64,000 bases of DNA from IMG/VR virus record IMGVR_UViG_3300042402_002641, positions 62,001 to 126,000 of that record. One strand, 5' to 3'. Below the pieces are notes generated by a model, which worked only from the letters and a program-made list of their open reading frames with translations, made no database searches and had not been told where the DNA came from. This document shows, one piece after another, positions 7,144 through 22,473 of the stretch; the first letter of the stretch is position 1, and each line of letters starts with the position of its first letter. The translations under genes and the position numbers were made by a program.

Positions 7144-7461
7144 ATGCTTAAGAAAAAGCTGTTATCTAGGAGCAGAGAATCCGTGACATTACCAGATGAA
7201 AGATACCGTGCAGTGCGGCACACAGAACAGTTTCTTCAACGACTAGCGGCTGGGGAATATCCCCGTGTGGCCAAGGCAGTTCGTGATGAAGCTAGAGCAT
7301 TGCTGCGACACTATCCTAATGGTTATGACATGGATCGTGCAGCGCGAGCCTGTCCTGATGTGTTTGTGGAACGCTATGAAGATCTGCACAGATTCGTCTT
7401 GCAGGCCCGTCGACTAGCTCCCACTGACGGAGGGGAACAGCAGCAGGAGATCACAGACTAA
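7144..7461 (+). CDS. Hypothetical phage protein
   Basis: Follows TTGACA(7109)-17-TATAAT; TLPDERYRAV...LLRHYP. Confidence 0.65.
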   Translation: MLKKKLLSRSRESVTLPDERYRAVRHTEQFLQRLAAGEYPRVAKAVRDEARALLRHYPNGYDMDRAARACPDVFVERYEDLHRFVLQARRLAPTDGGEQQQEITD

Positions 7462-7472
7462 GCAACAGTTTA

Positions 7473-7550
<78 letters not shown>

Positions 7551-7570
7551 CAACGCAGCAGCACAGCAAT

Positions 7571-7646
7571 CTGACCGTAGTTCAGGGGATAGAACAACAG
7601 CCTTCTAAGCTGTGGGTCGCTGGTTCGATTCCAGCCGGTCAGGCCA
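7571..7646 (+). tRNA. tRNA-Arg(TCT), encoded CCA
   Basis: Acceptor CTGACCG/CGGTCAG, anticodon arm ACAGC-CTTCTAA-GCTGT, T arm GCTGG-TTCGATT-CCAGC. Confidence 0.92.
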
Positions 7647-7933
7647 TTACAGCAGCAACAGCAGCAGAGAGAACGCACAGTGTACCGGCATCCCAATCCC
7701 ATGGATCCTCTAGATCCCTTTAAACGTTGGTATCGCCAGCTATGGCCCCTGCAGCGTGTGGGAGTGTGGATCTGCGCAGCTGTAGTGGTGTGGGCACTGC
7801 TGCTGTGGGTCACCATCTAACAGCAGCAACAGCAGCAGGGGCAGAGCGCAGCGAGATATCTGAGGAACCCTAAGGGTTCAAGGGTCTTTACATTTTGGTT
7901 GACAGAATGGTGAAATGGTGCTATAATTATAAC

Positions 7934-8272
7934 ATGAACTTAGAAAAGCCCACTCGTAAAAAGCGTCAAGACCGTACTCATATCATCTATGAGCTACGTG
8001 TCAACGGACTGTCTTACATAGGCGTCACTGCCAAGACTGAGACTACTATTAATAAGAGTGTTCTTGCTCGTGCAGCCAAGCACTTCTACAGAGCCAAGAA
8101 AGAGAACAAGGACTGGCTCTTGTGCCGGGCTCTGCGCTCGCTGAACGACAAGAGCGAGATAGAAGTACTTGTTCACGAAACACTCAGAGGCAAGGCAGCG
8201 GCACACCGGCGTGAGGTGGCTCTGCGCCGTGAAATTAACCCTGCGCTGAACACGGATGTTCGCGGGGACTGA
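7934..8272 (+). CDS. GIY-YIG domain protein
   Basis: IIYEL...SYIGVT, conserved R, E, and LN; ATG 6 nt after the -10 box (leaderless). Confidence 0.65.
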   Translation: MNLEKPTRKKRQDRTHIIYELRVNGLSYIGVTAKTETTINKSVLARAAKHFYRAKKENKDWLLCRALRSLNDKSEIEVLVHETLRGKAAAHRREVALRREINPALNTDVRGD

Positions 8273-8328
8273 TTGACAGCACAGCAGATTGGCACTATAA
8301 TTAACACATACACACAAAGGAGCGAGCA

Positions 8329-8517
8329 ATGTCATTATTCGATCAAGACTACAAAGTCATACAGGGTCTACAGCAACGCCTGGGCGGGTTGGGTCTCCTA
8401 GAGACTCTGACCTACATAGAGTCCAACACTGCTGAGTTCTCACTGCAGGAACTTCGCAGCTTTTACCACATCATGAGCGAGATGCGTCAGCTGTTCGCGC
8501 CTGCAGAAGCTGGTTGA
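8329..8517 (+). CDS. Small early protein
   Basis: Own promoter and AAGGAGCGAG RBS. Confidence 0.7.
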   Translation: MSLFDQDYKVIQGLQQRLGGLGLLETLTYIESNTAEFSLQELRSFYHIMSEMRQLFAPAEAG

Positions 8518-8569
8518 CAGCGTTGCAGAATGGTGCTATAATACACACATGTTAACAAAGGAGCGAACG

Positions 8570-8839
8570 ATGTCAGCATTAGCAAAGTTTATAGAACAGA
8601 AGAATCACTGGAACAGCTTCTTCAAGGGCGAGCAATACGAGATCGCTACACAGGCAGGGCGTCAACGTGTAGCAGATATGATCGACTCTGCACTTAGCCC
8701 AGAGAACCTTACCTGCGATGGCGAGCTGCCCAGGTCAGAAGTACAGCGCCGCTACCGAGAGCTGATCACAGCTGCCAAGCAGTTGAAGAAGTTGGACCCT
8801 TCAGTTACATTCTACGAATACTCAGAGGAGATTGCATGA
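8570..8839 (+). CDS. Early hypothetical protein
   Basis: Own promoter, AAGGAGCGAA RBS before ATG 8570; LSPENLTCDGE motif. Confidence 0.75.
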   Translation: MSALAKFIEQKNHWNSFFKGEQYEIATQAGRQRVADMIDSALSPENLTCDGELPRSEVQRRYRELITAAKQLKKLDPSVTFYEYSEEIA

Positions 8840-8997
8840 GACCCTACGAGTGTTTTTATCGTAATCAACGTTGCTCTGTAATGGCTGAGTCCAGCTACAG
8901 CGCACAGCAGAAAGCAGCCACGATATTCAAGGCACGTAAAAGCCATGAAGTGAGTGTGGTTTTAGCAGATGTTGTGGTTGACACAGCAGCAGTTTGA
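8836..8997 (+). CDS. Small early protein (53 aa)
   Basis: GAGGAG RBS, ATGA overlap with upstream stop. Confidence 0.55.
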   Translation: MRPYECFYRNQRCSVMAESSYSAQQKAATIFKARKSHEVSVVLADVVVDTAAV

Positions 8998-9039
8998 GCA
9001 TATAATATACACTTACACACACTAATAGGAGCGACGACT

Positions 9040-9489
9040 ATGGGAACACGATCAAGAGTAGGTGTCATGCATGGCACAGTCTGCAAGAGTGTCTACTGTC
9101 ACTACGATGGCTATCTAGAGTACACAGGCAAGCTGCTGCTTGACCACTACAACTCAGCAACAGCCAACGAGTTGGTAGCACGTGGAGACAACAGTGGAGT
9201 TCAGAAGTCCCTCGAGGACATGAACTTCTACACGGATCGTGGCGAAACCAATGTCAGCTGGCAGGTTGCGCACACCTTTGAAGAGTTCCTTGAGCAGGTC
9301 CACAACTGCGGGGGCGAGTACTACTATATCATGCGTGATGGTGAGTGGTACGCTGGCTCAGTCTACGGTGCCAAGGGCTTGGTCATGAATGGGTTGGTTC
9401 CCCTAGCAGAAGCTGTTGCTGCCAACACCATTGAGCAATTGACTGCAGAAACAACAGAAACCCAGATAGCACAAGTGTTATTCAAATAG
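9040..9489 (+). CDS. Early hypothetical protein
   Basis: MGTRSRVG...SVYCHYDGY; promoter plus AGGAGCGA RBS. Confidence 0.75.
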   Translation: MGTRSRVGVMHGTVCKSVYCHYDGYLEYTGKLLLDHYNSATANELVARGDNSGVQKSLEDMNFYTDRGETNVSWQVAHTFEEFLEQVHNCGGEYYYIMRDGEWYAGSVYGAKGLVMNGLVPLAEAVAANTIEQLTAETTETQIAQVLFK

Positions 9490-9554
9490 GGGTTGACAAC
9501 AGCCCCAAATGGTCGTATAATACACACATGTTAAACACAAATAGGAGCGAAACT

Positions 9555-10658
9555 ATGCAGATTATTCTTAGTGCAGGCAAGTACGGTAAGCCTAATCAAA
9601 TCTATGCAGGCATCCAATTGACCCTAGATCAGCCCTTTGTGAGCAGGCCCAAGGAGGGCTACGAAGGCTTCATCAAGGTGGTCAATGACGGAGCAAACAT
9701 CCGTGGCGGTGGCACCACCTGCGAAGTACTGTGCAATGAGGCTGACATCGAATATGTTACTAGTTCAACCCCCGTACCACAAGGAATCAGCATGCTGAAA
9801 GCACTGAAGAAGACTGCCAAGAACTCCGCAGAAGTCACGGACTTCACACAGGTCAAAGTGCCAGACGCTGTGGTTGCGCACGAGACAGACGAAGAGATCG
9901 TAGAGCGACTGCGCAATCGTTTCCAGGTCTTGCAGGACATGACCCAGGCAGTCAAAGAAGGTACTGTACGAGCAATGATCGTCACAGGCCCTCCGGGTGT
10001 AGGCAAGAGCTTCGGAGTTGAAGAAGTTCTGGGCAAACAGGATCTGTTCAATACACTGGGCAACAAGCGTCCCAAGTACGAGATCGTGAAAGGTGCTATG
10101 AGTGCCATTGGCCTCTACTCTAAGCTCTACCACTACAGTGAAAAGGGCAATGTCATCGTGTTTGATGACTGCGATTCAGTGCTGTTAGATGACTTGAGCT
10201 TGAACATTCTCAAGGCCGCTTTGGATTCTAGCAAGAAGCGTACTATCTCGTGGAACACTGATTCACGTATGTTGCGTTCAGAGGGAGTGCCTGACAGCTT
10301 TGAGTTCAAGGCAGGTGCTATCTTTATCACCAACATTAAGTTTGAGAATGTACGCTCTAAGAAGCTACAGGATCACTTGGCGGCACTAGAGTCACGCTGT
10401 CACTACGTGGATCTGCAGATGGACACAGACCGTGAAAAGGTCCTGCGTATCAAGCAGATCGTAGAAGATGGCATGCTGGACTCCTACGAGTTTGAGCCTG
10501 TGGTCAAGGACGAAGTCGTAGACTTTATCGTAGAGAACCGTTCAAAGATGCGTGAGTTGAGCCTGCGTACGGTGCTGAAGGTAGCTGATCTGCGCAAGAG
10601 CTTTGCTACCAATTGGAAAGGCATGGCAGAAGTCACTGTGATGCGGGGAGCACGATAA
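9555..10658 (+). CDS. AAA-family P-loop ATPase
   Basis: Walker A GPPGVGKS, Walker B VIVFDDCD, arginine finger ALESR; RBS AGGAGCGAA places start at 9555. Confidence 0.85.
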   Translation: MQIILSAGKYGKPNQIYAGIQLTLDQPFVSRPKEGYEGFIKVVNDGANIRGGGTTCEVLCNEADIEYVTSSTPVPQGISMLKALKKTAKNSAEVTDFTQVKVPDAVVAHETDEEIVERLRNRFQVLQDMTQAVKEGTVRAMIVTGPPGVGKSFGVEEVLGKQDLFNTLGNKRPKYEIVKGAMSAIGLYSKLYHYSEKGNVIVFDDCDSVLLDDLSLNILKAALDSSKKRTISWNTDSRMLRSEGVPDSFEFKAGAIFITNIKFENVRSKKLQDHLAALESRCHYVDLQMDTDREKVLRIKQIVEDGMLDSYEFEPVVKDEVVDFIVENRSKMRELSLRTVLKVADLRKSFATNWKGMAEVTVMRGAR

Positions 10659-10888
10659 TGGCAGGGTGCCAATATCTGGGTCCGGAATACGACCCTCACA
10701 GACACAGAGGGCCCACGCCCTTCTGTGGTGCTGAGACCATTCAGGGCAAGAGCTACTGTCACGATCACTACTACGTGGTCTACAAGAAGGGCACAGCAGT
10801 CAACGGCAAGAAGCGTGAGAAGGCTGTGGACCAAGAGATCGCTGAGCTTAAACGCCAGCAGGAGTTAGAGGAGATAGATAATGTTTGA
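10658..10888 (+). CDS. GcrA C-terminal-domain-like zinc-binding protein
   Basis: CQYLG...P.FCG.....GKSYCHDHY..VY resembles GcrA C-terminal CxWPxG..FCG....PYCxxH...Y. Confidence 0.55.
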   Translation: MAGCQYLGPEYDPHRHRGPTPFCGAETIQGKSYCHDHYYVVYKKGTAVNGKKREKAVDQEIAELKRQQELEEIDNV

Positions 10889-11081
10889 TAGCATGCTGAA
10901 GATTGGGCTAGCCATAGTGTTGATAGTGGTCTTGTTGGCCATTGGACCCTGGTTAGTGATTTGGGCTCTGAATACACTGTTCCCCCTGTTGGCTATCCAG
11001 TTCACGTTTTGGACTTGGTGTGCTGTGGTGATCCTGGGCACGTTCTTTCGAGCGAATGTGTCTGTAAAACGGAAGGATTGA
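10881..11081 (+). CDS. Small membrane protein
   Basis: Two hydrophobic segments; GAGGAG RBS. Confidence 0.65.
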   Translation: MFDSMLKIGLAIVLIVVLLAIGPWLVIWALNTLFPLLAIQFTFWTWCAVVILGTFFRANVSVKRKD

Positions 11082-11163
11082 GGTTGCAGATGATCTGTGA
11101 TTCATGTATTATTAACTAATGCTGAAGAACAGATAATCAGCTGTTAACAAAGGAAACTTAAAA

Positions 11164-11436
11164 ATGAAGAGATTCAATCCAGAAACAAAGACTTTCAAGG
11201 TCTTCCACGCACTGTACAAAGGTGCTGCTCTTACCCAAAGCCAAGCTGAAAAGCGTTTTGGTGTCAAGAACTTGGCTGCAGAAGCCAGCCGTATCCGCCA
11301 AGCAGGCTACGCTGTTTATTCAAACAGCCGCACAGCTGGCAACGGCGTAACAGTCACAGAGTATGTGATGGGCACACCTAGCCGTGAAATCGTAGCACTT
11401 GGTTACAAAGCCAAGAGCATGGGCATCACAGTCTAA
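11164..11436 (+). CDS. Winged-helix/HTH-like small protein
   Basis: LTQSQAEKRFGVKNLAAEASRIRQAGYAVY HTH-like pattern followed by a beta wing. Confidence 0.6.
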   Translation: MKRFNPETKTFKVFHALYKGAALTQSQAEKRFGVKNLAAEASRIRQAGYAVYSNSRTAGNGVTVTEYVMGTPSREIVALGYKAKSMGITV

Positions 11437-11463
11437 GCAGTTGTTTCTCGACCCTAAGGGTCG

Positions 11464-11536
11464 TTCAAAGAACAAGCCGATTCGCTCCCGGGGCGTTCTT
11501 TGGAGGGTGTTGTAGAAATACAACACCCTTTTTCTT
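11464..11536 (+). ncRNA. Candidate 3'-UTR sRNA copy 1: hairpin with loop AUUCGCUCC, then intrinsic terminator
   Basis: TTCAAAGAAC/GTTCTTTGGA outer stem, CCG/CGG inner stem, loop 11480-11488; terminator AGGGTGTTGTA-GAAA-TACAACACCCT-TTTT. Confidence 0.6.
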
Positions 11537-11750
11537 TGGCCGGCACTCCCAAAAAGAGGTTGACAGATTGGATACATAGTGTTATAATACACACATGAAC
11601 AAGCAAGGAGTGAACCAAATGGCATTCAATTACGAAAAATACTACGCAACTCTTTTCCGTAAGCGTGGTTACCACCTAATCAACGGTGTGTGGTACTACG
11701 ATGCAGAAGGCAAGTACCAAGTTTACAACACAGCATCCTAAGGAGTGACT

Positions 11751-12383
11751 ATGCAATTCACTGCTGAACAAGTTTGGGCCTGTGCTGCTGCTGCGCAGCG
11801 TATCAACGAAGGCTACTTCAAAGAAGATCAATGGGACACAGCTGAGGCTGGAGTCAAGATCAAGACCGCCAACAAGCTCTTGGTCAAAGATTGGCTTCGC
11901 ACCAATGACTACTCCCAGATCACTGCTGCAGATACTGCAGAGGGGATCCGTGCTCGTAACCATTTCAAATCTTACACTCTACTGGCCATAGCTGGCAGAC
12001 TCAACGAGTTCCAAGAGACTGCAATGAAGCTGGCAGCCAAAGAAGAGTTCACAGGTCGCGATATGTATGATTTCGCTGTGATCTCATGCTTGCCTTCAGT
12101 GTCTGTGCGTGATGCTGCGAACGCGGAACTCAAACGCGAGATCTATACCTCAGAACAGCTCCACGGAGCTGAAGGGGATAGGATCCAAGGTGAAGTCACT
12201 GTGATCAACACCCGTTTCAATCCTGACTACAACAAGCACAAGATCCGGGGTCGCATGGGCGAGAGCTTCGTGGACTTTTGGTTCGGGTCTGCTCTAGAAG
12301 GCACAGTAAAGATCAAGGCCAAGATCAAGAGCCAACGTGGCGATAAAACAACACAGCTAAACTATGTGAAAATACTTGGTTGA
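11751..12383 (+). CDS. Early hypothetical protein, possible C-terminal OB-like domain
   Basis: AGGAGTGA RBS; beta-rich C-terminus ending TQLNYVK. Confidence 0.7.
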   Translation: MQFTAEQVWACAAAAQRINEGYFKEDQWDTAEAGVKIKTANKLLVKDWLRTNDYSQITAADTAEGIRARNHFKSYTLLAIAGRLNEFQETAMKLAAKEEFTGRDMYDFAVISCLPSVSVRDAANAELKREIYTSEQLHGAEGDRIQGEVTVINTRFNPDYNKHKIRGRMGESFVDFWFGSALEGTVKIKAKIKSQRGDKTTQLNYVKILG

Positions 12384-12461
12384 CAAAGAGCGAAATTGGT
12401 GTTATACTTATGACACTGAGAGATTAATTGTTTTAACTGTTCTAACTAGCGAGGTCTTAAT

Positions 12462-13547
12462 ATGGCAAAAGCACAAGATATTTCCGTCCGTCAAGTTGGC
12501 CCTAAGGGTGCCAAGAAGGCGATCCGACACGCAATCAAGATGCGTCGTCCAACATTCCTCTGGGGTCCTCCAGGCATTGGCAAATCAGATCTCGTCAAGC
12601 AGATCGGTGATGACGCTGGTCGTGAGGTCATTGACGTTCGCCTGGCTCTTTGGGAACCCACAGACATCAAGGGCATCCCTTATTACAATGCAGAGCAGGG
12701 CAAGATGGTTTGGGCTCCTCCTGCAGAACTGCCCACTGATGCAGACTCTAAGGCAATCATCTTCCTAGATGAATTGAACTCTGCACCTCCAGCAGTCCAG
12801 GCCGCGGCCTATCAGTTGATCCTGAACCGCCGTGTTGGCACATACCATTTGCCCAAGGGCGTGGATGTTGTGGCCGCAGGTAACCGCGAAGGTGACCGTG
12901 GTGTCACATACCGTATGCCTGCTCCGTTGGCTAACCGTTTCATCCACTTGGAAATGAAAGTGGACTTTGATGACTTCCAAGACTGGGCTACTTTGCACAA
13001 GGTGCATCCAGAGGTTGTGGGTTATGTGGGTTTTGCCAAGCAGGACTTGTATGACTTTGATCCTAAGAGTTCCTCTAAGGCGTTTGCAACTCCACGCTCG
13101 TGGGTGTTCGTTAGCGATCTACTGTCAGATGATGACTGCGACAACGACACATTGACAGCACTGATCGCAGGTGCTATTGGTGACGGCTTGGCTTCTAAGT
13201 TCATGGCTCACCGCAAGATCGCAGGCAAACTGCCCAAGGCTGGTGACATCCTCGACGGCAAGGTCAAGGACCTGCAGATCAAGGAAGTGTCAGCGATGTA
13301 TTCTTTGACTGTTAGCCTGTGCTATGAGCTCAAGGACCGTGCAGAGAAGAAGGCTAAGAACTGGGACGATATGGCAGACTGCTTCTTCCGCTACATGATG
13401 GATAACTTCCCAACTGAGTTGGTTGTGATGGGTGCCAAGACCGCGCTCACCAACTATGACTTGCCCTTGGACGCTACTAAGATGAAATCCTTCGATGAAT
13501 TCCACAAGCGTTTTGGTAAGTATGTTTTGAGTGCCATGGAGAATTAA
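12462..13547 (+). CDS. MoxR/dynein-related AAA+ ATPase
   Basis: GPPGIGKS, IIFLDELN, AAGNR, PAPLANRF, TPRSW. Confidence 0.9.
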   Translation: MAKAQDISVRQVGPKGAKKAIRHAIKMRRPTFLWGPPGIGKSDLVKQIGDDAGREVIDVRLALWEPTDIKGIPYYNAEQGKMVWAPPAELPTDADSKAIIFLDELNSAPPAVQAAAYQLILNRRVGTYHLPKGVDVVAAGNREGDRGVTYRMPAPLANRFIHLEMKVDFDDFQDWATLHKVHPEVVGYVGFAKQDLYDFDPKSSSKAFATPRSWVFVSDLLSDDDCDNDTLTALIAGAIGDGLASKFMAHRKIAGKLPKAGDILDGKVKDLQIKEVSAMYSLTVSLCYELKDRAEKKAKNWDDMADCFFRYMMDNFPTELVVMGAKTALTNYDLPLDATKMKSFDEFHKRFGKYVLSAMEN

Positions 13548-13564
13548 GACCTCGCCCATGGCCG

Positions 13565-13602
13565 GGCTACGGGCTCCTCAGGGTTCGTAGCCCACCTTTT
13601 TT
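13565..13602 (+). terminator. Intrinsic terminator
   Basis: GGGCTACGGGCTC-CTCA-GGGTTCGTAGCCC then T tract. Confidence 0.7.
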
Positions 13603-13658
13603 GGTTGACAGGTGTGTAAATAGATGCTATAATATACACATACTAAGGAGAGCGACTA

Positions 13659-14867
13659 ATGGACCCAATCATAGAGAAACTAACAACTGCTAGAGTAGGA
13701 CTGTTGCTCAAAGCACCGTTCTTCGGCAACATGGCAACTCGTATGAAGTTGATTGATGCTTCAGACTGGTGCCCTACCGCCGCAACCAACGGTCGTGACT
13801 TCATGTATAACAAGAAGTTCGTAGAGAAACTTTCTGTTAAGAAACTAGAGTTCCTGTTCGCACATGAGATCTGTCATGCCGTATTTGATCACTTTGGTCG
13901 TTTAGGTTCGCGTATTCCACAACTGGCGAACATCGCACAGGACTACGCTGTGAACCAGATCCTGGTAGATGAACGCATTGGTGAGAAGATCACTGAGGTA
14001 AAAATCTGCTATGACGCCAAGTATCGTGGATTGGCCTGGGAAGAGATCTATGACGAGCTCTTCGAAAAAGCAGAGAAGATCCCTATGGAACAACTGCTGG
14101 CACAACTAGGTGATCTCCTAGACGAGCACATCAAAGAAGAAGAAGGTGCTGGCTCGGGTGGTGGTGACAAGACCAAAGACGGCAAGGGCAAGCCCTCGTT
14201 GACTAAAGAAGAAGCCGAACAGATCCGCGATGAGATCAAGAACGCCATGATCCAAAGTGCCGCGGCCGCTGGTGCTGGTAAGGTGCCCGCAGGTATCCAA
14301 CGCTTGATCAAGAACTGGACTGAGCCTAAGATGGACTGGCGCCAGTTGGTGCAACAAGAGATCCAAAGCATTGTTCGCAATGACTACTCCTTTCAGCGTG
14401 TGAATCGCAAGAGTATGCACAGTGGTGCTATCTTGCCAGGCATGAAAGAAGCAACTACCATTGACGTGGCAATCTCAATCGATATGTCAGGTTCTATCGG
14501 TGATGAAGATGCAACTGCATTCCTCAGCGAGATCAAGGGCATCATGGACCAGTACGAGGACTTCAAGATCAACCTGTGGTGCTTTGACACCGATATCTAC
14601 AACTGGAAACAGATCACACACGACGAAGCTCATGAACTGGTAGAATATGAGCCACAGGGCGGCGGTGGCACAGACTTCGAAGTCAACTGGACCTTCATGG
14701 AAGAGAATGGTATCCAGCCCAAGAAGTTCATCATGTTCACAGACGGCTACCCATGTGGCGGTTGGGGCAACGAGGACTACTGCGACACGATCTTTATCGT
14801 CAAAGGCAATGAGAAAGCAGAAGCACCCTTTGGGCAGACTGTGATCTATGAAAAAGAGGCGGCGTGA
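13659..14867 (+). CDS. vWA domain plus putative metallopeptidase (DUF2201-like), partner of the MoxR ATPase
   Basis: TAATNG, HExxH (AHEICH), MIDAS DMSGS, GGGGTDF, FTDG. Confidence 0.88.
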   Translation: MDPIIEKLTTARVGLLLKAPFFGNMATRMKLIDASDWCPTAATNGRDFMYNKKFVEKLSVKKLEFLFAHEICHAVFDHFGRLGSRIPQLANIAQDYAVNQILVDERIGEKITEVKICYDAKYRGLAWEEIYDELFEKAEKIPMEQLLAQLGDLLDEHIKEEEGAGSGGGDKTKDGKGKPSLTKEEAEQIRDEIKNAMIQSAAAAGAGKVPAGIQRLIKNWTEPKMDWRQLVQQEIQSIVRNDYSFQRVNRKSMHSGAILPGMKEATTIDVAISIDMSGSIGDEDATAFLSEIKGIMDQYEDFKINLWCFDTDIYNWKQITHDEAHELVEYEPQGGGGTDFEVNWTFMEENGIQPKKFIMFTDGYPCGGWGNEDYCDTIFIVKGNEKAEAPFGQTVIYEKEAA

Positions 14868-15436
14868 TTGGAGTGCCAGGGGTTGTGGCTTTTCTGCCAC
14901 AGGCCCCGCTGCTTACGTGTGCGTGTAACCTATCGGTTGACATCTAGGCAGATTGGTGTTATAATATAGACATATTAACAGAGAAGGAGCGGTAATGATG
15001 GAACTGATTTTAGCATTCGTAGCAGGTATGATCGTAATGGACGTGATGTGGGCCTGGCGCATGGGCATCCCCCAGATGCTGTGGTATCGCTTCCGTAATC
15101 GCAACAACCCCCAACCTAACTTTGATCAGGAGTAATCATGATGAGTCATCTCGTAGCATTCTTCCTTGGAATCTTCGTGGCAACTGTGGGCATCACAGGT
15201 GTGGCCAGTGTGGCAGACAAGGGCGTTAATCAAGTTCAACAGGTAATGAAAGAGGCAGCTAAATGAGCAAGATGGCAGATCTCACATACGATATCGAGCA
15301 ACTGTACATTGAGGGCCATTCGCCTAGGATGATCTCAATCATGCTGGAGTGCCCCATTGAACAGGTTTATGGATGGTTAGAAGAAGTAGGCCTTGATCCC
15401 GAAGACTACAGCCCGCATGCCACTATAAATAGTTAG

Positions 15437-15763
15437 ATGAGCAAGTTAGAGTTCCTAGCAAGGCCCTTGGTGGCCTTTGATCCCTACAACAAGGATCACA
15501 GACGCTACTACGCAGAGTTCCTTGAACTCGGCGGTTGGGGTCGCTGCCCTGTGAGGTTCATCTGCCCAGAAGACACTGGCTTTGATCTGCCTACTATGAT
15601 ACAACGTAGTTTGATCAGCTACTACATCGATCGTGAGTTCGGCGGGGGAAAGTTGGCTCGTGACCGATCAGACATGCTGCGCCGCAAGGCCGACGCTCTC
15701 TACAAAGAAGCGGGCAAACTGCGCATTGAATCTAAAGCTCTGCTAAAACCCAGGCGGTCATAG
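15437..15763 (+). CDS. Hypothetical protein
   Basis: TATAAATA-N5-ATG start. Confidence 0.65.
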   Translation: MSKLEFLARPLVAFDPYNKDHRRYYAEFLELGGWGRCPVRFICPEDTGFDLPTMIQRSLISYYIDREFGGGKLARDRSDMLRRKADALYKEAGKLRIESKALLKPRRS

Positions 15764-15839
15764 GGTCTTTAGACATATCGGTTGACAGATTGGCGACTTG
15801 GTGCTATACTATAGGTATAGTGAATAACAAGGAGCGAAG

Positions 15840-16106
15840 ATGTATCTACCATTACTAACTGAAAAAGAACAAAAGGCTGTGGTCCGCGCACTGCGTGGCT
15901 GGCAGTTTATCCGTAAAAATCACGGTAGCCTGTTCGATCGTGGTTCAGCAGACAGCTACTACGGTCGTTCACGTATTCCACACTACGGCGGCGTTGGTGG
16001 TGACTCTGGACCTAGGGTCGAAGTCACTGATGCCAAGAGCGTGGCTGAATACATGGCTGGCTATGATGAAAACGAACAATTTGGTGACAAGAAAGACTGG
16101 CGCTGA
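15840..16106 (+). CDS. Early hypothetical protein
   Basis: Promoter plus AAGGAGCGAA RBS; HGSLFDRGSADSYYGR. Confidence 0.7.
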   Translation: MYLPLLTEKEQKAVVRALRGWQFIRKNHGSLFDRGSADSYYGRSRIPHYGGVGGDSGPRVEVTDAKSVAEYMAGYDENEQFGDKKDWR

Positions 16107-16441
16107 TGGAGGCTCTACGTGAAATCACAGAATGGACGGGTGTTGAGTATCGCAGTCCCAACCACGACTACCTATTGGACGGTGACAAGATCATTGCTTA
16201 TCGCCCCTGGGGCACTGCAGAGATCCGTGTGCTCCGGTCAGGTATTAAGATCGACCGTCGCGGCCGGAAGTTCGTCAAATTGGATCCAAACCCCTTTAAT
16301 CTCATAGAAAGTAAATCAAATGCAATCACAGTCACTGGTTCTAAAGGTCAAGTCTATTCGGTCGATGCAGAAGCCCATACCTGTACCTGTCCAGGGTTCC
16401 AATTTCGAGGTGCCTGCAAACACCTGGCAAGCCATGGTTGA
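16106..16441 (+). CDS. SWIM zinc finger protein
   Basis: CTCPGFQFRGACKH. Confidence 0.8.
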   Translation: MEALREITEWTGVEYRSPNHDYLLDGDKIIAYRPWGTAEIRVLRSGIKIDRRGRKFVKLDPNPFNLIESKSNAITVTGSKGQVYSVDAEAHTCTCPGFQFRGACKHLASHG

Positions 16442-16521
16442 ACGCATGATGTCAGGCAAATGATTGGTTGACATTTTGGCTAACCTGTGCTATAATATAC
16501 ACATACTAAGGAGAGCGAGCA

Positions 16522-16710
16522 ATGACAGTTAAGTTTGAAGATCTGCGTGAAGGTTCTGTGGTCATAGTGCGTGGTGCGTTTGGCACAGGCCCTGAAGAGC
16601 GTGTTAAGGTTGAAGGCTTGGACAGGGACATTAAGAATGGCTACCCTGGCATTGACTACAACGGTTCTTGGGCCTACTTGGACCAGGTAGTGCGTGTGGT
16701 GCAATACTAA
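16522..16710 (+). CDS. Small early protein
   Basis: Promoter plus GGAGAGCGAG RBS. Confidence 0.65.
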   Translation: MTVKFEDLREGSVVIVRGAFGTGPEERVKVEGLDRDIKNGYPGIDYNGSWAYLDQVVRVVQY

Positions 16711-16931
16711 TGAAGAAGTTCACCTTTTGGCGTAATGCCATCATATCAGAACTCTACGTGGTTGATGCGGCAACTGAAGAACAAGCACGTGAGATGCTGC
16801 AGAATGGGGAAGTGGAAGTGTTCAATGAGGAATGGATAGATTGGGCCACGGACGATTTCGAACTTGAGCACGTGGAAATCATTGACCCTTTGTATAGAAT
16901 GGTAAAAGACTATGACACCGCAGGAACATGA
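16710..16931 (+). CDS. Small acidic protein
   Basis: TAATG coupling; VDAATEEQAREM. Confidence 0.6.
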   Translation: MKKFTFWRNAIISELYVVDAATEEQAREMLQNGEVEVFNEEWIDWATDDFELEHVEIIDPLYRMVKDYDTAGT

Positions 16932-17111
16932 ATACATTCGTAGAGCTGTAGAGGCCCTGGAGAATCCCGAGATCACTCCCATGACACAGCGAAAGATCCT
17001 AAGGACCATGGAACAGATCTGTGGCAAAAATGCCACACTGATTGAACAGAAATTGGTTGACACAGTCGAAGATCGGTTGTATAATAGTAATACTTAAACA
17101 AAGGAGCGAAT

Positions 17112-17741
17112 ATGCCTAATTGGTGTTCAAATCATATCACGGTGCGTGGCACCGACCCTGTGGCAATCAAACGATTGGCTGATGCGTTTGATGCGGGTGA
17201 GTTCTGCGGTACGGTAGTGCCTATGCCAGAAGAACTCAACATCACCTCAGGCCGCCTGGGCGATGGTGTTGAGCAGGCTGAACTAGAGGCCAAGAGTGCG
17301 GCCAACCTAGAGAAGTATGGTTATGCCAACTGGTATGACTTCAATGTGGCCAATTGGGGCACCAAGTGGGAAGTCGGTGGCGATGGCAGCACAGCAGAGA
17401 TCGAAGATGATGGCTTGAGCTTCTCTGCACCCTTTGAATCAGCCTGGTCGCCACCGATTGGAGTCTGTGAGGCCCTGGTTGAACAGGGCTTTGAAGTCAC
17501 TCTTTACTACTACGAACCCGGCATGGGCTATGTGGGCAAGTGGGAGGATGGCATCGACGACTGCTACGAGTATGGTGGTGAGAAAGCCGCTACAGTTCGA
17601 GCTGCCATCGGTGATGAGCTGGACGACATGTTCGGCATCTCAGAGTCCATGGCTGAATACGAAGCAGAGAACGAAGAGGAAGAACTCACAGAATGGATCA
17701 AGGACGGTGTTGAACAGAAGAAGGCTTTGATCGCACTATGA
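17112..17741 (+). CDS. DUF1281/YubB-like ferredoxin-fold protein
   Basis: MPNWCSN, WYDFNVANWGTKW, FESAWSPP, YYEPGM; RBS AAGGAGCGAAT. Confidence 0.75.
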   Translation: MPNWCSNHITVRGTDPVAIKRLADAFDAGEFCGTVVPMPEELNITSGRLGDGVEQAELEAKSAANLEKYGYANWYDFNVANWGTKWEVGGDGSTAEIEDDGLSFSAPFESAWSPPIGVCEALVEQGFEVTLYYYEPGMGYVGKWEDGIDDCYEYGGEKAATVRAAIGDELDDMFGISESMAEYEAENEEEELTEWIKDGVEQKKALIAL

Positions 17742-17997
17742 GAACCTTGAAGTTCCAATTTGAAGTGATCTGTGCCTCAGAGGGCACAGCTGACGAAACC
17801 TTGGTTGAATCAATGATTGATTTGGCCATGCAAGATCTGGTCTATGACGACGAGTTTATCGTGGCCCTAGGCGAGAAAGAGAGTGTCACCATCCGCGTGT
17901 CTAGATTGGACAAATGAATGGTTGACATTTAGGGTAGCCGATGCTACTATTATAACATGCTGATTGGCATATTTTTACACACACAGGAGTAATTGAA

Positions 17998-18300
17998 ATG
18001 AGTACAGAGAAGAAGTTTGCGGTTGCTGGAGTTAGCACACTCGACGGCAAGACCAAGGTGCGTTTTGCCAATGATACCATGCGTATCAAGATCTTGGGCA
18101 AGAACGGCCACACAGATGTCAACCTCGTGGATCTTCCACGTGAAATGACCAAGGCTGAGATCGCTCAGCACATGGTCGAGGTTGGCTTTGGCAAGGGCAA
18201 TGCAGCTATCGAAGCTGCCATCGCCTACGTAGCCAAGAAAAATCCTGCACCCAAGCAGGTCAAGGCCACTGTCGCGAAGACAGAGGCTGTGGTTGCCTGA
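17998..18300 (+). CDS. Conserved-looking hypothetical phage protein
   Basis: FAVAGVS...KVRFAND..RIKIL.KNGHTDV; own promoter; RBS AGGAGTAA. Confidence 0.7.
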   Translation: MSTEKKFAVAGVSTLDGKTKVRFANDTMRIKILGKNGHTDVNLVDLPREMTKAEIAQHMVEVGFGKGNAAIEAAIAYVAKKNPAPKQVKATVAKTEAVVA

Positions 18301-18367
18301 TCCGATTCGCTCCCGGTAATCAGCAACCTTGATAGAGACCCTACTAACACTAGGGTCTCTTTTTTTT
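18291..18367 (+). ncRNA. Candidate 3'-UTR sRNA copy 2: hairpin with loop AUUCGCUCC, then intrinsic terminator
   Basis: GGTTG/CAACC, CTGA/TCAG and CCG/CGG stems, loop 18305-18313; terminator AGAGACCCTA-N7-TAGGGTCTCT-T7. Confidence 0.6.
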
Positions 18368-18426
18368 GGTTGACATTTTGGCTAAAGTGCGTTATAATTG
18401 CTACTTACACACACAAGGAGCCCACA

Positions 18427-18678
18427 ATGTTTACAAACTGCATAGCCTACGCAAAGTTAGTTTACAACAAAAAACTTAACGCATACAAAATGCAGATTGC
18501 ATTTAATGTACACAAAAAGTTAGTAGGCACTAACTACAAATATTTGTTTCCTGTACAAAGCAAATGCAACTATGTTAGCGGGGACTTACTTGCAGAAAAT
18601 TTAGAAGCAGAAGTGCAACGCACTGTGGCTTTTGCACAACAAAACTTGCGTACAACACAAATTGTAATAGTAGACTAA
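18427..18678 (+). CDS. Early hypothetical protein (TC-depleted island)
   Basis: Promoter at 18370, AAGGAG RBS, ATG 18427. Confidence 0.7.
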   Translation: MFTNCIAYAKLVYNKKLNAYKMQIAFNVHKKLVGTNYKYLFPVQSKCNYVSGDLLAENLEAEVQRTVAFAQQNLRTTQIVIVD

Positions 18679-18763
18679 GTTGTAGGGCCTTTACAGCACA
18701 CACTTGCATTTTGGACAGGTGTGTGCTATAATTGTTTTTTAAACACAGCATTAGGAGCGAACT

Positions 18764-19135
18764 ATGCAAGCAACGACATTTAACGTAAGCGACAAGCTAA
18801 CACTGGTAAGCACAGACACAGACACAGACAGCGTTAGCACAACATACAACTGTAACGTAGAAGTGCAACTAGCAGGCGACAGCATATGGGACTGCGAGCT
18901 AGAGGCAGTTACAGTTACAAGCATACACATACACGAGAACTTTTGGGAAGACACAAGCACAGTACACATTGCAGTTTGCTACAACGTAGACGGTGTAGAC
19001 GGCAGTGAAGTAGAGGGCAGCTGGCGTATGTATACAGACAGCGGCTTTGAAGAGGCTGTTAGTGCTTTGCTAGGCACAGACGTTAGATTTACGGAGCAGG
19101 GAATGCAAGACGACGGCTTTGCGAGCATGGAATAA
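18764..19135 (+). CDS. Highly acidic early protein (TC-depleted island)
   Basis: AGGAGCGAA RBS; D/E-rich; YTDSGFE...FTEQGMQ. Confidence 0.75.
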   Translation: MQATTFNVSDKLTLVSTDTDTDSVSTTYNCNVEVQLAGDSIWDCELEAVTVTSIHIHENFWEDTSTVHIAVCYNVDGVDGSEVEGSWRMYTDSGFEEAVSALLGTDVRFTEQGMQDDGFASME

Positions 19136-19200
19136 AAACAACAGCACACTTGCATTTTGGATGTAAGTGTGCTATAATACATTTTTAAAGAAAGCACTAG

Positions 19201-19341
19201 ATGAAAACAGCAACTAAACAAAAAATTGACAGCTTAATGCTACAGCTACAAGACTTGTTAGAGGACGAGTACAGCGAACATGACGCTATACAGACAGCGT
19301 TTAACGACCTAGCTATTGCGCTAGACGATGTTGTAAATTAA
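19201..19341 (+). CDS. Small acidic helical protein (46 aa, TC-depleted island)
   Basis: MKTATKQKIDSLMLQLQDLLEDEYSEHDAIQTAFNDLAIALDDVVN; own promoter. Confidence 0.55.
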   Translation: MKTATKQKIDSLMLQLQDLLEDEYSEHDAIQTAFNDLAIALDDVVN

Positions 19342-19431
19342 CAACACAGGGGTGTAGGCCCCGCTGCTTAAGGGGTTGACGCAGCCCCCTTTTGGCAGTA
19401 TAATGAACACATACACACACAGGAGCACTCC

Positions 19432-19722
19432 ATGAACATCACCCAGATCAACTCAGCCATCATGCAAGGCCAATTCACCAACGATGAACTAACCTCTGTG
19501 ATCGATGCGGTCAAGTTTGCTCGAGCACGACTCAACAGAGAGGTCAAGAGCGGCCTGATGGTGGGAGACAATGTGGAGTTTACATCCAGCAAGACTGGAC
19601 GGGCCATGCGTGGGTTCGTAACCAAAGTAGCCATCAAGTATGTCACTGTGAACACGGGTGCAGGCCTTTGGCGAGTGCCGGCCAACATGCTGACTCGGGT
19701 AAAAGAGTCAGAGCTGGCGTAA
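19432..19722 (+). CDS. Early hypothetical protein (SH3-like C-terminus)
   Basis: VGDNVEF...GFVTKV..KYVTV...WRVPANML; promoter plus RBS. Confidence 0.7.
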   Translation: MNITQINSAIMQGQFTNDELTSVIDAVKFARARLNREVKSGLMVGDNVEFTSSKTGRAMRGFVTKVAIKYVTVNTGAGLWRVPANMLTRVKESELA

Positions 19723-19726
19723 ATAC

Positions 19727-20107
19727 ATGATGCTAGAACTTGTTATCGTATTCGCTCTGGGGTGGATCTTAGGCTGGAAGATCAATGATGCTCTAAGAAC
19801 CGCTGCCATCAAAGCCCTACTCAAAGAACTGGGAGTCACTGACCAGGATCTCCGGGCAGCCGCAGCTCGAAACGGCATTGAAATCTCAGCGGCCCCTGAC
19901 ACAGCAGCTGATGAAACTGTGGTGGAAGTCAAGCTGGAACAGCACGGGGGGCAGATCTTTGCTTACCGCAAGAGTGATGACACATTCTTGGCTCAGGGCA
20001 CAGACAGAGATTCTCTGATCGAGCGATTGAACCAGACCATGCGGCCCTGTAGGATCTTGATCGACAAAGAAGACGGCGCTGATCTGTTGCAGAAAAACAA
20101 CACCTAA
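19727..20107 (+). CDS. Membrane-anchored hypothetical protein
   Basis: N-terminal hydrophobic helix; TAAATA upstream. Confidence 0.65.
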   Translation: MMLELVIVFALGWILGWKINDALRTAAIKALLKELGVTDQDLRAAAARNGIEISAAPDTAADETVVEVKLEQHGGQIFAYRKSDDTFLAQGTDRDSLIERLNQTMRPCRILIDKEDGADLLQKNNT

Positions 20108-20147
20108 ATTGGTTGACAGTTTGGCAGTTCAGTGTTATAATACACAC

Positions 20148-20384
20148 ATGACACAAACACAAATAGACAACACCCTACAGTGGACCGGAGCAGCGGCCAT
20201 CATCGCCATGCACGTACTCAACGCAGCAGGCCCCGAGGCTTATCCCTGGAACATCATCGCAGCTTTCATCGGAACTGTTGCATTCCTTTCATGGACCATC
20301 CGTGTGAGAAACCTGCCGCAGTTCACGGTAAACGTGGTAGCATTAGCCATAGGCTTTGTAGGGTTATATCGAGCGTTTGGTTGA
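20148..20384 (+). CDS. Small multi-pass membrane protein
   Basis: Three hydrophobic segments; ATG 6 nt after TATAAT. Confidence 0.65.
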   Translation: MTQTQIDNTLQWTGAAAIIAMHVLNAAGPEAYPWNIIAAFIGTVAFLSWTIRVRNLPQFTVNVVALAIGFVGLYRAFG

Positions 20385-20416
20385 CACATTGGCGTTTTGG
20401 TGTTACAATAGATACA

Positions 20417-20630
20417 TAGACAGTTAGGAAAGAGCAAAAGGTTACCTACACCGTTAGGTACTTAGAGGGTTAGGACAGTGGCGACGGTCACGCTCAATCT
20501 AGGTACATGAAACAGGGCAGTGATGCTCGGAGAAGCGGCGGATCTTGTAGGCAGTAATGACGGTACAAGCCCTTGTGGAGACGGTCCCTGGGGTAGACTA
20601 CATGTTCCTTTGCTTTTTCCCAACTGTCTA
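20417..20630 (+). ncRNA. Unidentified structured ncRNA (~215 nt)
   Basis: Dedicated promoter TTGACA(20381)-17-TACAAT; ~24-bp closing helix 20417-20441/20607-20630; several internal helices; no RBS-led ORF. Confidence 0.65.
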
Positions 20631-20702
20631 ACAGCCAGGTTGACAACTAGCCAAATTAGTTGTATAATAGACACATACAAACAAACATTAGGAGCGAACC
20701 CA

Positions 20703-21086
20703 ATGACTAAAGTAAATTATGACCGTTTTGCCTCGTTTGACATTAACGAGTGCTGTGACCACTTTGATAGCGAGAAACAGAGCAACTGGAAGAAGATCGG
20801 CAAGTTCATCGTAGCAGATGGACAAGAGTACGCCCACATTATGGAAACAGAGTTCGACTTTGAAGACGTGGGTAGTGGCGAGTACGAGGCCTTTGACGCA
20901 GGTGTTAAGTATGCCCTTACTAAGATGAACATTGCCTTTGAGGCAGCAGGTTTGGACCTACAGATCTGCGAGGTAGACCTTGTAGAGAGCATGGGCTTTA
21001 TGATGGTACGTTGCGATGACGAGCCCGAGGACTTTGTCAAGCGTGTGATGAAGAAGCCCGTGATGATGGTAGACAGCTGGATTTGA
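20703..21086 (+). CDS. Acidic early protein
   Basis: Promoter at 20640 and AGGAGCGAA RBS place start at 20703. Confidence 0.72.
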   Translation: MTKVNYDRFASFDINECCDHFDSEKQSNWKKIGKFIVADGQEYAHIMETEFDFEDVGSGEYEAFDAGVKYALTKMNIAFEAAGLDLQICEVDLVESMGFMMVRCDDEPEDFVKRVMKKPVMMVDSWI

Positions 21087-21176
21087 TAGAGTGCCAAAGT
21101 TCAACCCGCCACTAGACCCTGCAACTCGCCTGGGCACTTCGCGGGTTGACACTGAGGCTTTATTCAAGGATGTGAC

Positions 21177-21413
21177 ATGGGTTGGGTAGTCTACGATGAG
21201 AAGTCGGGTCATATGCAGAAGTACTACAAATTGGCTTCTACAGCCAAGCGGATCTGTACTCAGCACAACACTGAGAGAGAATACGATTTCTACACATATC
21301 GTGCTCAATCCACGTGGTCCTTCTGCAGCTACAGGGACTACGAAGGGGTCTTGATGGGACTTAGAGGGGATGCTCTAAAGATGTGGCAGTTCTGCAACAC
21401 TGAAATTGGTTGA
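21177..21413 (+). CDS. Hypothetical protein
   Basis: AAGGA RBS; stop overlaps next -35 box. Confidence 0.6.
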   Translation: MGWVVYDEKSGHMQKYYKLASTAKRICTQHNTEREYDFYTYRAQSTWSFCSYRDYEGVLMGLRGDALKMWQFCNTEIG

Positions 21414-21583
21414 CACTTTGGTAGATCGGTGCTATACTAGAGACTAAGTTAAACAAAAGGAGCGGACTATGTTGAAACTGATCGGAATCGCGGCTGTGGC
21501 CTACATTGGTTGGGTAACTGGCTTGATACAGGCCACCTTGATGATCACTGCAGGCGTATTGATCGCCATTGCTGGAGTCTAAC

Positions 21584-21784
21584 ATGGCCTACAGAATAGT
21601 CAACGATGTGCTCCAGGGATACGGACCGCGAAAGGGTCTCGAGGGGCCGTTCAACATCGGTGGTCGCCCACTCTACTACGATGCCCGAGAGGGCAGCTAC
21701 TGGGATCCCCGCACGGATTTCTACGTGGATCAATCAGAGGTCAACTACCTGCACAACGAACTCATGCGAATCATGGGTGGTTGA
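21584..21784 (+). CDS. Small hypothetical protein
   Basis: GLEGPF...LYYDAREGSYWDPRTDFYV. Confidence 0.65.
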   Translation: MAYRIVNDVLQGYGPRKGLEGPFNIGGRPLYYDAREGSYWDPRTDFYVDQSEVNYLHNELMRIMGG

Positions 21785-21841
21785 CAGTTTGGCTAAAAGA
21801 TCGTATAATACGTACATACACACAGCAACTAGGAACACACA

Positions 21842-22174
21842 ATGAAACTGCTGATCACCACACAAGTCTACGAGAACTACGGTGCCCACGATTGGGACGG
21901 AGTTGGCGCATGCCCACAGTACTGGAAGGCCAAAGGCGGTTCAGACTATGTGATCCGGAACATCAACGTGAATCAAGTCACTGAGACTGTGATGGCTGTG
22001 CGTGGCCAGATCGAGCAGGACAATGACGCCTTCCGCGAGTCAATCATCGATTGGAGCATAGTCTCCGATGATGCGCTCACAGAGTTTGAGCAGAGCCAGT
22101 TGGCCTACGAAGGCGTGATCCGTTATGCTTCCAAAGAGATCCAGCCTGCGGACCCAGTCTACTACGGCGCCTAA
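21842..22174 (+). CDS. Hypothetical protein
   Basis: TQVYENYGAHDWDG..CPQYWKAKGG; own promoter. Confidence 0.7.
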   Translation: MKLLITTQVYENYGAHDWDGVGACPQYWKAKGGSDYVIRNINVNQVTETVMAVRGQIEQDNDAFRESIIDWSIVSDDALTEFEQSQLAYEGVIRYASKEIQPADPVYYGA

Positions 22175-22242
22175 AGTGGTTGACAATTTGGCTAAAAGAC
22201 CGTATAATTAACACATACACAAACACTCACAGAAAGACACAA

Positions 22243-22428
22243 ATGACAACCAAACAAGCCATGTTCGTATTCGTAGCAGGACTGCTTCTCACACTGGCTG
22301 CTGTAGGCGGTGTAGAGCACAGCGTGGACAACGAGCAACTCACAGGTAGTCTGCTGTTGGCAGTGATAGGACTGCTGGGCATGTATGCGGGCACCCTGGG
22401 TTTCCGTAACGCAGATCTCTATGATTGA
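22243..22428 (+). CDS. Small membrane protein
   Basis: Two hydrophobic segments; own promoter. Confidence 0.6.
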   Translation: MTTKQAMFVFVAGLLLTLAAVGGVEHSVDNEQLTGSLLLAVIGLLGMYAGTLGFRNADLYD

Positions 22429-22473
22429 CAGCTGGGACAGAACCTAGTATAATACACACACAAGGAGCAGACT

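Follow-up and report, generated by a model that had tools for sequence, protein, structure and literature searches.

Several described systems silence phage or bacterial messages at the ribosome-binding site. In phages P1 and P7 the c4 RNA acts on icd-ant, and in P22 a comparable role belongs to sar. These antisense RNAs mask a ribosome site and are made from the operon of their own target, each as a small structured RNA whose exposed recognition bases are complementary to a ribosome site plus neighbouring specificity bases. Bacterial small RNAs with C-rich or anti-SD seed loops and many targets (e.g. S. aureus RNAIII, or alpha-proteobacterial aSD-motif sRNAs such as mmgR) are built as a hairpin with a CUCC-containing loop followed by an intrinsic terminator. 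In T4, on the other hand, the early ribosome sites share an 11-nt site beyond GGAG that is read by a protein nuclease, RegB, together with S1; its consensus is GGAGAAUAAAA, in which GGAG is followed by an A-rich 7-mer from which C is almost excluded (PMC1702504). Here we describe a class-specific extension of early ribosome sites, AGGAGCGAA, in an uncultured jumbo phage with a 280-kb genome, known only from lake metagenomes, which matches, base for base, the loop of two conserved RNA hairpins in the same region. This match suggests (albeit does not prove) an RNA switch on early-gene translation.

We analyzed a window of 64,000 nt (positions 62,001 to 126,000 of the IMG/VR record IMGVR_UViG_3300042402_002641). 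An earlier note, based on the sequence alone, had pointed out that GGAGCGA and related variants lie just upstream of the start codons of its early genes, and this observation is confirmed at every coordinate. The heptamer occurs 10 times in the window against 4.07 ± 1.84 in shuffled sequences (0 of 100 shuffles reach 10). Eight copies are on the + strand, 2–5 nt before an ATG that opens an ORF and behind near-consensus sigma-70 promoters, whereas the other two are reverse complements located inside hairpin loops. The coordinates of all features are collected in the table.

Features of the early region (window coordinates; loop positions are given with their hairpins)
Position	Strand	Feature	Start codon	Remarks
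7109..22453	+	Early array		23 sigma-70-type promoters (17 perfect TTGACA-N17-TATAAT), each followed by a conserved start region AnACACAT(A/G) and a short CA-rich leader
8319..8325	+	Tag GGAGCGA	ATG at 8329	
8560..8566	+	Tag GGAGCGA(A)	ATG at 8570	
9028..9034	+	Tag GGAGCGA	ATG at 9040	
9544..9550	+	Tag GGAGCGA(AA)	ATG at 9555	AAA ATPase
11466..11502	+	Hairpin A		In the 3' UTR of the winged-helix gene 11164-11436; outer stem, 3x3 internal loop, CCG/CGG stem, 9-nt loop AUUCGCUCC at 11480-11488
11502..11540	+	Intrinsic terminator		Directly after hairpin A
11607..11613	+	Variant GGAGUGA	ATG at 11619	
11742..11748	+	Variant GGAGUGA	ATG at 11751	Most orthologues have GGAGCGA
13647..13655	+	Variant GGAGAGCGA	ATG at 13659	DUF2201 peptidase/VWA; variant kept in all orthologues
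14986..14992	+	Variant GGAGCGG	ATG at 14995	Variant kept in orthologues
15831..15837	+	Tag GGAGCGA(A)	ATG at 15840	
16510..16518	+	Variant GGAGAGCGA	ATG at 16522	
17103..17111	+	Tag GGAGCGAAU	ATG at 17112	Full 9-nt complement of the loop
18291..18328	+	Hairpin B		5' arm overlaps the stop codon of gene 17998-18300; same core, loop AUUCGCUCC at 18305-18313
18334..18368	+	Intrinsic terminator		Directly after hairpin B
18754..18760	+	Tag GGAGCGA(A)	ATG at 18764	
20691..20697	+	Tag GGAGCGA(A)	ATG at 20703	
21459..21465	+	Variant GGAGCGG	ATG at 21469	

To assess whether the motif is specific for the early class, as the note had proposed to check, we compared the -20..-1 regions of all starts, using our own gene calls for the 280-kb genome. 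GGAGCGA was found at 8 of 37 early starts against 3 of 301 others (Fisher p = 1.3e-6), and the loose pattern GGAG(AG)?[CT]G[AG] at 13/37 against 5/301 (p = 2e-10). Other genes use AAGGAG(A)/AAGGA sites with A or T after GGAG, and late genes of the same phage use AAGGAGA-type sites. The claim of the note that the motif is absent from ribosome sites outside the array holds for the window, but in the whole genome there are three exceptions (starts at genome positions 9260, 126042 and 3694, all on the - strand). The enrichment is repeated in an independent 353-kb relative (98% complete), where 8 of its 16 GGAGCGA sites lie in the early promoter array.

The analysis was further extended to 80 related metagenomic loci, in which 427 of 650 distinct promoter-leaders have a GGAG site. 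The next base is C in 78% of these and the one after it is G in 78%, although G is rare in the leaders. The gap between GGAG and ATG is 5–8 nt in 403 of the 427 leaders and in all 14 sites of the window, consistent with the position of a canonical Shine-Dalgarno site. The conserved bases of the extension, however, are not those that pair with the canonical 16S 3' end (..CACCUCCUUA): the C, G and A after GGAG face C, A and C of this tail, which is here assumed to be that of the host. In 9 ortholog families C, G and A are 93, 92 and 81% conserved, respectively, against 41–72% for leader positions, so that the tag is better conserved than the rest of the cassette. On the other hand, only C and G of the extension stand clearly above the A-rich background, and the ninth pair (U) is present in only about 14% of leaders.

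Each of the two hairpins sits at the 3' end of an early transcription unit directly before an intrinsic terminator, the usual build of a 3'-UTR-derived small RNA. Two of the three strong + strand terminators in the array follow a hairpin, and the terminators are also present in relatives. The hairpins fold with z-scores of -3.5 and -4.4. A total of 66 distinct instances with different outer stems was found; seven of 9 outer pairs show compensatory changes, and 0 of 500 shuffles reach the observed covariation score. The core CCGAUUCGCUCCCGG (a 15-nt apex) is essentially invariant, with one compensatory CUG/CAG stem. The loop AUUCGCUCC, invariant across the clade, is the exact complement of GGAGCGAAU and contains a UUCG of the U-turn type. 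Duplexes of the loop with tagged ribosome sites are -13 to -16 kcal/mol, as compared to only -6.5 to -8.6 kcal/mol for the canonical anti-SD. A third conserved complement, of 12–13 nt, occurs at the ribosome site of a late csgF-like gene elsewhere in the genome. This site, CCGGGAGCGAAUCG-AUG, gives -25.8 kcal/mol and is kept down to 57% protein identity while its flanks change; it is also the third model hit in a 98%-complete relative. In contrast, the hairpin-bearing genes 11164 and 17998 never carry the tag in 44 and 27 distinct orthologous leaders, respectively.

A comparison with the described systems shows both parallels and differences. As in c4 and sar, the putative regulator is a small structured RNA transcribed with its presumed targets, and its loop contains a YUNR-type U-turn motif, as in fast-pairing antisense RNAs. 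However, one loop would here address a whole class of 10–20 early genes through a shared SD extension, in a lytic jumbo phage rather than in an immunity circuit. There is no Rfam match at gathering score, and hence no homology to c4: only two tRNAs reach this score in the window, and the hairpin regions give sub-threshold, chance-level hits. With RNAIII and mmgR the hairpins share the general build, and one-to-many targeting of ribosome sites would also explain an invariant seed, but the seed extends beyond CUCC into UUCG, which matches only tagged sites, so that host mRNAs would be spared. The weak matches to the mmgR (18.4 bits against a gathering score of 41) and RefA9 models rest on the terminator. 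The T4 system likewise has a class-specific signature at early GGAG sites that could allow early-gene shut-off, but the site here is GGAGCGAA, with C right after GGAG, the opposite of the RegB/S1 site.

Overall, the reading that we favor, with a probability of about 50%, is that the tag is the shared target of an antisense hairpin RNA that masks early ribosome sites. In this view, host RNA polymerase transcribes the early genes from about 23 near-consensus promoters, yielding mRNAs with very short, CA-rich and probably unstructured leaders, whose AGGAG pairs with 16S rRNA in the usual way, whereas CG(AA) serves as a class-specific address complementary to the loop over 8–9 nt. As early transcripts accumulate, the hairpin RNA would pair with tagged ribosome sites, in trans or with the first cistron of its own operon, out-competing the weaker 5-bp pairing with 16S and lowering translation of tagged genes (a feedback shut-off of the early class). 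Early genes without the tag, including those that carry the hairpins, would escape, and the csgF-like gene would be the strongest target. The analysis establishes the motif, its class specificity, its conservation beyond descent, the structure of the hairpins and the complementarity, while the pairing of the RNAs in the cell, the accumulation of the hairpin as a discrete RNA and a repressive effect on translation are all inferred. The loop never varies wherever the hairpin exists: a scan of viral contigs for the hairpin frame with a free 5' half of the loop returned AUUCG in every true hairpin (other matches were unrelated GC-rich sequence), leaving no natural loop–tag covariation to exploit. 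Full pairing inside a 9-nt loop is sterically limited unless the 3-bp stem opens, and cofold energies of hairpin RNA with leaders did not separate tagged from untagged ones, as the method cannot model loop pairing. The region is present in lake metatranscriptomes, albeit as assembled contigs that provide neither ends nor abundances and do not exclude DNA carry-over.

The interpretation offered by the earlier note is thus partly supported. Its claims that CGA(A) is not explained by canonical anti-SD pairing, that it is specific for the early class and that it is more than cassette duplication all hold. Of the two mechanisms it had proposed, reading by the hairpin RNAs gains real comparative support, whereas a RegB-like nuclease gains none.

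Among the alternatives, the one that survives best, although unlikely, is that a protein (e.g. a RegB-like endonuclease or a RegA-like translational repressor) reads the tag on single-stranded RNA and the hairpins have an unrelated role. The T4 precedent (PMC1702504) and the fact that most early proteins here have no assigned function speak in its favor. Profile searches for the RegB (PF10715), RegA, Hfq and CsrA families returned no match in the genome, although the RegB and RegA controls did not give a signal either and the record is 79% complete. The C that follows GGAG in 78% of leaders is almost excluded from RegB/S1 sites, and this reading would leave to chance the exact 9-nt complement in an invariant loop and the 12–13 nt complement at the csgF-like gene.

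It is about as unlikely that the extension tunes initiation on the ribosome itself, by limiting the SD helix to 5 bp, favoring S1 binding or matching ribosomes that carry the phage's own bS21, with a coincidental hairpin match. The phage does encode a bS21 homolog (66.7 bits), which is widespread in the clade, and the leaders are CA-rich and short. However, any non-G base would limit the helix, yet specifically C and then G are conserved, and strongly expressed late genes such as the tail sheath use GGAGAAAA-type sites. Early genes must be translated before phage bS21 is made, and the bS21 gene lies outside the early array with an ordinary upstream region. The loop complementarity also stays unexplained.

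Still less likely is a DNA operator: an early DNA-binding protein, for example the winged-helix product of 11164-11436, would bind GGAGCGAA just downstream of early start sites and shut the promoters off, the hairpin and csgF-like sites being further operators in the opposite orientation. As complementary RNA motifs are the same double-stranded DNA site, a DNA-level reader is not formally excluded, and the winged-helix gene sits next to hairpin A and is the best-represented part of the region in the RNA runs. On the other hand, the distance from the -10 box to the motif varies from 13 to 23 nt while the spacing to the ATG is fixed at SD distance, all tags share the orientation of transcription, and the site is asymmetric and unrepeated. 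At the hairpins, selection clearly acts on RNA structure, with compensatory stem changes around an unpaired loop. Finally, a functionless tag inherited by repeated duplication of one promoter-leader cassette is largely refuted, since, even though these units form repeat families that are 60–87% alike over 40–64 nt, most of that identity lies in the -35 box, -10 box and start-site positions, leaders differ in length and sequence and drift across orthologs while C and G stay, and genes with a variant tag in this genome have the exact tag in most relatives (the table marks variants that are kept).

A broader form of the favored reading, which we hold tentatively and consider somewhat less likely than not, is that the tag and the loop form a phage-private SD/anti-SD pair, in which a single 9-nt RNA loop would address the whole early class, plus one late gene, through an extension that host mRNAs lack (an RNA-only counterpart of the protein-based early shut-off of T4). 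A more radical variant, in which the loop acts as an adaptor together with ribosomes carrying phage bS21 to activate tagged mRNAs, is very unlikely. If true, the favored mechanism would be a natural example of addressed translation control, with a short extension of the ribosome-binding site marking a temporal gene class for one regulatory RNA. It would explain how a widespread, uncultured clade of freshwater jumbo phages ends its early phase without a recognizable RegB or RegA, and would supply a compact orthogonal tag/anti-tag pair for synthetic biology. The promoters and ribosome sites are E. coli-like, which makes the idea accessible even though the phage and its host are not in culture.

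With respect to distribution, a near-identity DNA search against cultured phages gave no match, and the distant cultured relatives PA5oct and Phosso have neither tag nor hairpin in the homologous region. No hairpin hit was obtained in a more distant 282-kb relative, whose contig starts only at the end of the early array. A search with the bS21 homolog, aimed at inferring the host, returned only proteins of the phage clade. GGAGCGA appeared depleted outside ribosome sites (3 non-site copies in 1.2 Mb), but same-composition controls showed that all GGAG-containing 7-mers are equally avoided, so that the depletion is not specific. A 17-nt complement inside the tail-sheath gene encodes a conserved DAPGANP peptide and varies at synonymous sites in distant relatives, and is therefore probably fortuitous.

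The 280,019-bp viral record of which the window forms bases 62001-126000 is classed as linear in IMG/VR and estimated by CheckV to be 79% complete. Near-identical DNA occurs in many lake-water metagenomes, whereas no cultured phage matches at the DNA level, and at the protein level the nearest cultured phages are distant jumbo phages (PA5oct, Phosso, Atu_ph07 and Rak2-like phages, at 27-44% identity). The GC-richer block at 7.1-22.5 kb of the window (49% GC against 35-44% further on) carries 23 sigma-70-type promoters on the + strand, of which 17 are perfect TTGACA-N17-TATAAT, each followed by a conserved start region AnACACAT(A/G) and a short CA-rich leader. This is a host-polymerase early region. 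Coordinates of the features discussed here are collected in the table.

The earlier note had described GGAGCGA, with a few variants, as an extended ribosome site just upstream of the start codons of early genes; every coordinate it gave is correct, and its observation holds. The heptamer occurs 10 times in the window against 4.07 expected, a number that none of 100 shuffles reached. All eight copies on the + strand lie 2-5 nt before an ATG, while the two on the - strand fall within hairpins (see below). Using our own gene calls for the whole genome, the heptamer was found in the -20..-1 region of 8 of 37 early starts and of 3 of 301 others (p = 1.3e-6), and with the variants listed in the note included the counts become 13/37 against 5/301 (p = 2e-10). 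The remaining genes use AAGGA or AAGGAG(A), with A or T after GGAG.

To distinguish selection from common descent, we searched with the DUF2201 protein of the early region and recovered 80 related viral contigs at 73-100% protein identity. On their early strand CGA follows GGAG at 491 of 1338 candidate ribosome sites. Among 650 distinct promoter-leader units 427 have a GGAG site, in which the following base is C in 78% and the next is G in 78%, although G is about 7% elsewhere in the leaders; on the other hand, A at +3 and +4 (51% and 55%) barely exceeds the A-rich background. For nine genes whose orthologues mostly carry the tag, the leaders differ in length and sequence (41-72% agreement with the family consensus), while C, G and A after GGAG agree at 93, 92 and 81%. 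Genes with a variant in this genome, such as GGAGUGA at 11742, have the exact tag in most relatives, whereas other genes keep their own variant throughout (GGAGAGCGA at 13659 and GGAGCGG at 14995), and three core genes (11164, 12462 and 17998) never carry the tag. The pattern is repeated in a 353-kb relative that is 98% complete, where eight of the 16 GGAGCGA sites lie in the early array. Recent duplication of a promoter-leader cassette, which the note had named in advance as an outcome that would count against its reading, is therefore not the explanation.

Canonical pairing with 16S rRNA does not account for the extension either. Against the canonical 16S tail (the established sequence, taken here in place of that of the host) only AGGAG pairs, and the following C, G and A face C, A and C. 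The late genes of the same phage, read by the same ribosomes, do not use the extension. Predicted anti-SD duplexes for the tagged sites are -6.5 to -8.6 kcal/mol.

The two - strand copies of the motif lie in the 9-nt loops of two hairpins, A and B, both with the apex CCG-AUUCGCUCC-CGG and each followed directly by a strong intrinsic terminator; only three strong + strand terminators exist in the array. The loop is the exact complement of GGAGCGAAU. Across the clade we found 66 distinct instances at the two orthologous sites, with different outer stems. In the 32 sequences of site A, 7 of 9 outer pairs show compensatory changes, cells that form a pair are 89.8% against 75.8% in shuffles, and none of 500 shuffles reached the observed covariation score. 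In contrast, the 15-nt apex is essentially invariant, with one compensatory CUG/CAG stem. The loop contains UUCG, a YUNR-type U-turn motif that would stack CGCUCC for pairing. Hairpin B begins 2-4 nt after the stop codon of the upstream gene in all relatives. No Rfam family matched at gathering score.

A covariance model of the hairpin identified four places in the genome. The third is the antisense of the ribosome site of a csgF-like secreted protein, CCGGGAGCGAAUCG-AUG. This 12-13 nt complement of the hairpin apex is kept in relatives down to 57% protein identity while the flanks change, and it is also the third hit in the 353-kb relative. The predicted duplex is -25.8 kcal/mol, against -13 to -16 for tagged early sites and about -6 for typical sites. 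The ribosome site, GGGAGCGAAUCG, lies in the loop of a 5' hairpin and mirrors the early hairpin apex, so that two fully complementary 9-nt loops could kiss. The gene lies behind a TAAATAC motif. In fact, (A/T)TAAATA(C/T), located 20-35 nt before start codons, is the most enriched upstream word of non-early genes (ATAAATA 16 against 1.4 expected); it resembles the T4 late promoter TATAAATA and occurs before the tail sheath and other structural genes. The fourth place, a 17-nt perfect complement of hairpin A (loop plus 3' stem) inside the tail-sheath gene, encodes the conserved peptide DAPGANP and drifts at synonymous sites in distant relatives, and was discounted.

Coordinates and strands of the features in and around the early region and elsewhere in the genome (L082, L085 and L086 are labels of sequence pieces of the record)
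Feature	Position	Strand	Remark
GC-rich early block against the following genes	window 1-26000 against 28000-56000	+ against mostly -	sharp change, 46-51% against 34-43% GC
19-nt element, four copies	window 6546-6564, 7073-7091, 14895-14913, 19350-19368		core AGGCCCCGCUGC
tRNA-Met (CAT) and tRNA-Arg (TCT), with two CAGCAGCAACAGCAGCAG-type repeats just downstream of them	window 7473-7646, 7649-7680, 7820-7851		head of the early array
Apparent leaderless early genes	window 7899-7936 and 20113-20150		ORFs from 7934 and 20148
Start-site ATG preceding an SD-led start	window 8549, 9528, 11595		in frame and open
Winged-helix gene	window 11164-11436		just upstream of hairpin A
Hairpin A	window 11466-11502
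MoxR-type AAA ATPase followed by DUF2201 metallopeptidase/VWA protein	window 12462-14867
DUF2201 protein used as query	window 13659-14867
Hairpin B	window 18291-18328
csgF-like secreted protein	L085:1018-1513 (genome 8778-9273)	-
Complement at the csgF-like ribosome site	genome 9261-9273		third covariance-model hit
bS21 homologue	L082:1456-1692 (genome 15421-15657)	-	79 aa
17-nt complement in the tail-sheath gene	L086, genome 133550-133566	-	fourth covariance-model hit

The simplest account of an SD extension that 16S cannot read, and of an invariant structured loop that is its exact complement, is RNA-RNA pairing. The layout of a hairpin plus terminator is suggestive of a 3'-UTR-derived small RNA, and one seed facing many targets would explain why neither side drifts. 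The likely effect would be a masking of early ribosome sites, that is, a feedback shut-off comparable in logic to T4 RegB/RegA and in mechanism to the P1 c4 or P22 sar antisense RNAs. Action in cis, on the first cistron of each hairpin's own operon (9555 and 17112 both carry the tag), is equally possible. While our analysis establishes that the tag is real, specific to the early class and under selection, the pairing, the small RNA and the repression are all inferred. Public RNA runs represent the region only as assembled contigs, without RNA ends or abundance. The best-represented part of the region in these metatranscriptomes is the winged-helix gene, with up to 68% of its sampled words found in river and lake RNA runs, against 8-24% for the 6-kb stretch. 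The interpretation offered in the note, that the tag is read either by the hairpin RNAs or by an RNA-binding protein or nuclease, is partly supported: its hairpin hypothesis is the best-supported explanation, with a probability of about 0.5, and would represent a new form of antisense control of ribosome sites.

Other explanations appear less likely. A RegB-like nuclease is disfavored, as profile searches of the genome (a record 79% complete) returned no RegB, RegA, Hfq or CsrA family match, although the RegB and RegA controls gave no match either, and C after GGAG is almost excluded from the RegB/S1 site of T4. A role at the level of the ribosome itself, possibly involving the phage's own bS21, does not explain the specific CG or the loop. 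The encoded bS21 homologue scores 66.7 bits to PF01165 and has about 3800 close relatives in metagenomes, all of the top hits belonging to this phage clade. A DNA operator read by the adjacent winged-helix protein cannot be formally excluded, since complementary RNA is the same duplex DNA; however, the motif keeps SD spacing and not promoter spacing, and the hairpins are clearly under RNA-structure selection.

In the apparent leaderless early genes the ATG sits 6-7 nt after TATAAT, at the predicted start site. Clade-wide, a start-site ATG preceding an SD-led start is in frame in 51 cases against 9 out of frame, and 75 promoters have only the start-site ATG. The MoxR-type ATPase and DUF2201 pair of the early region is conserved in many jumbo phages (785 phage records match). 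Of the four copies of the 19-nt element, three (7073, 14895 and 19350) sit 20-40 nt upstream of an early promoter.
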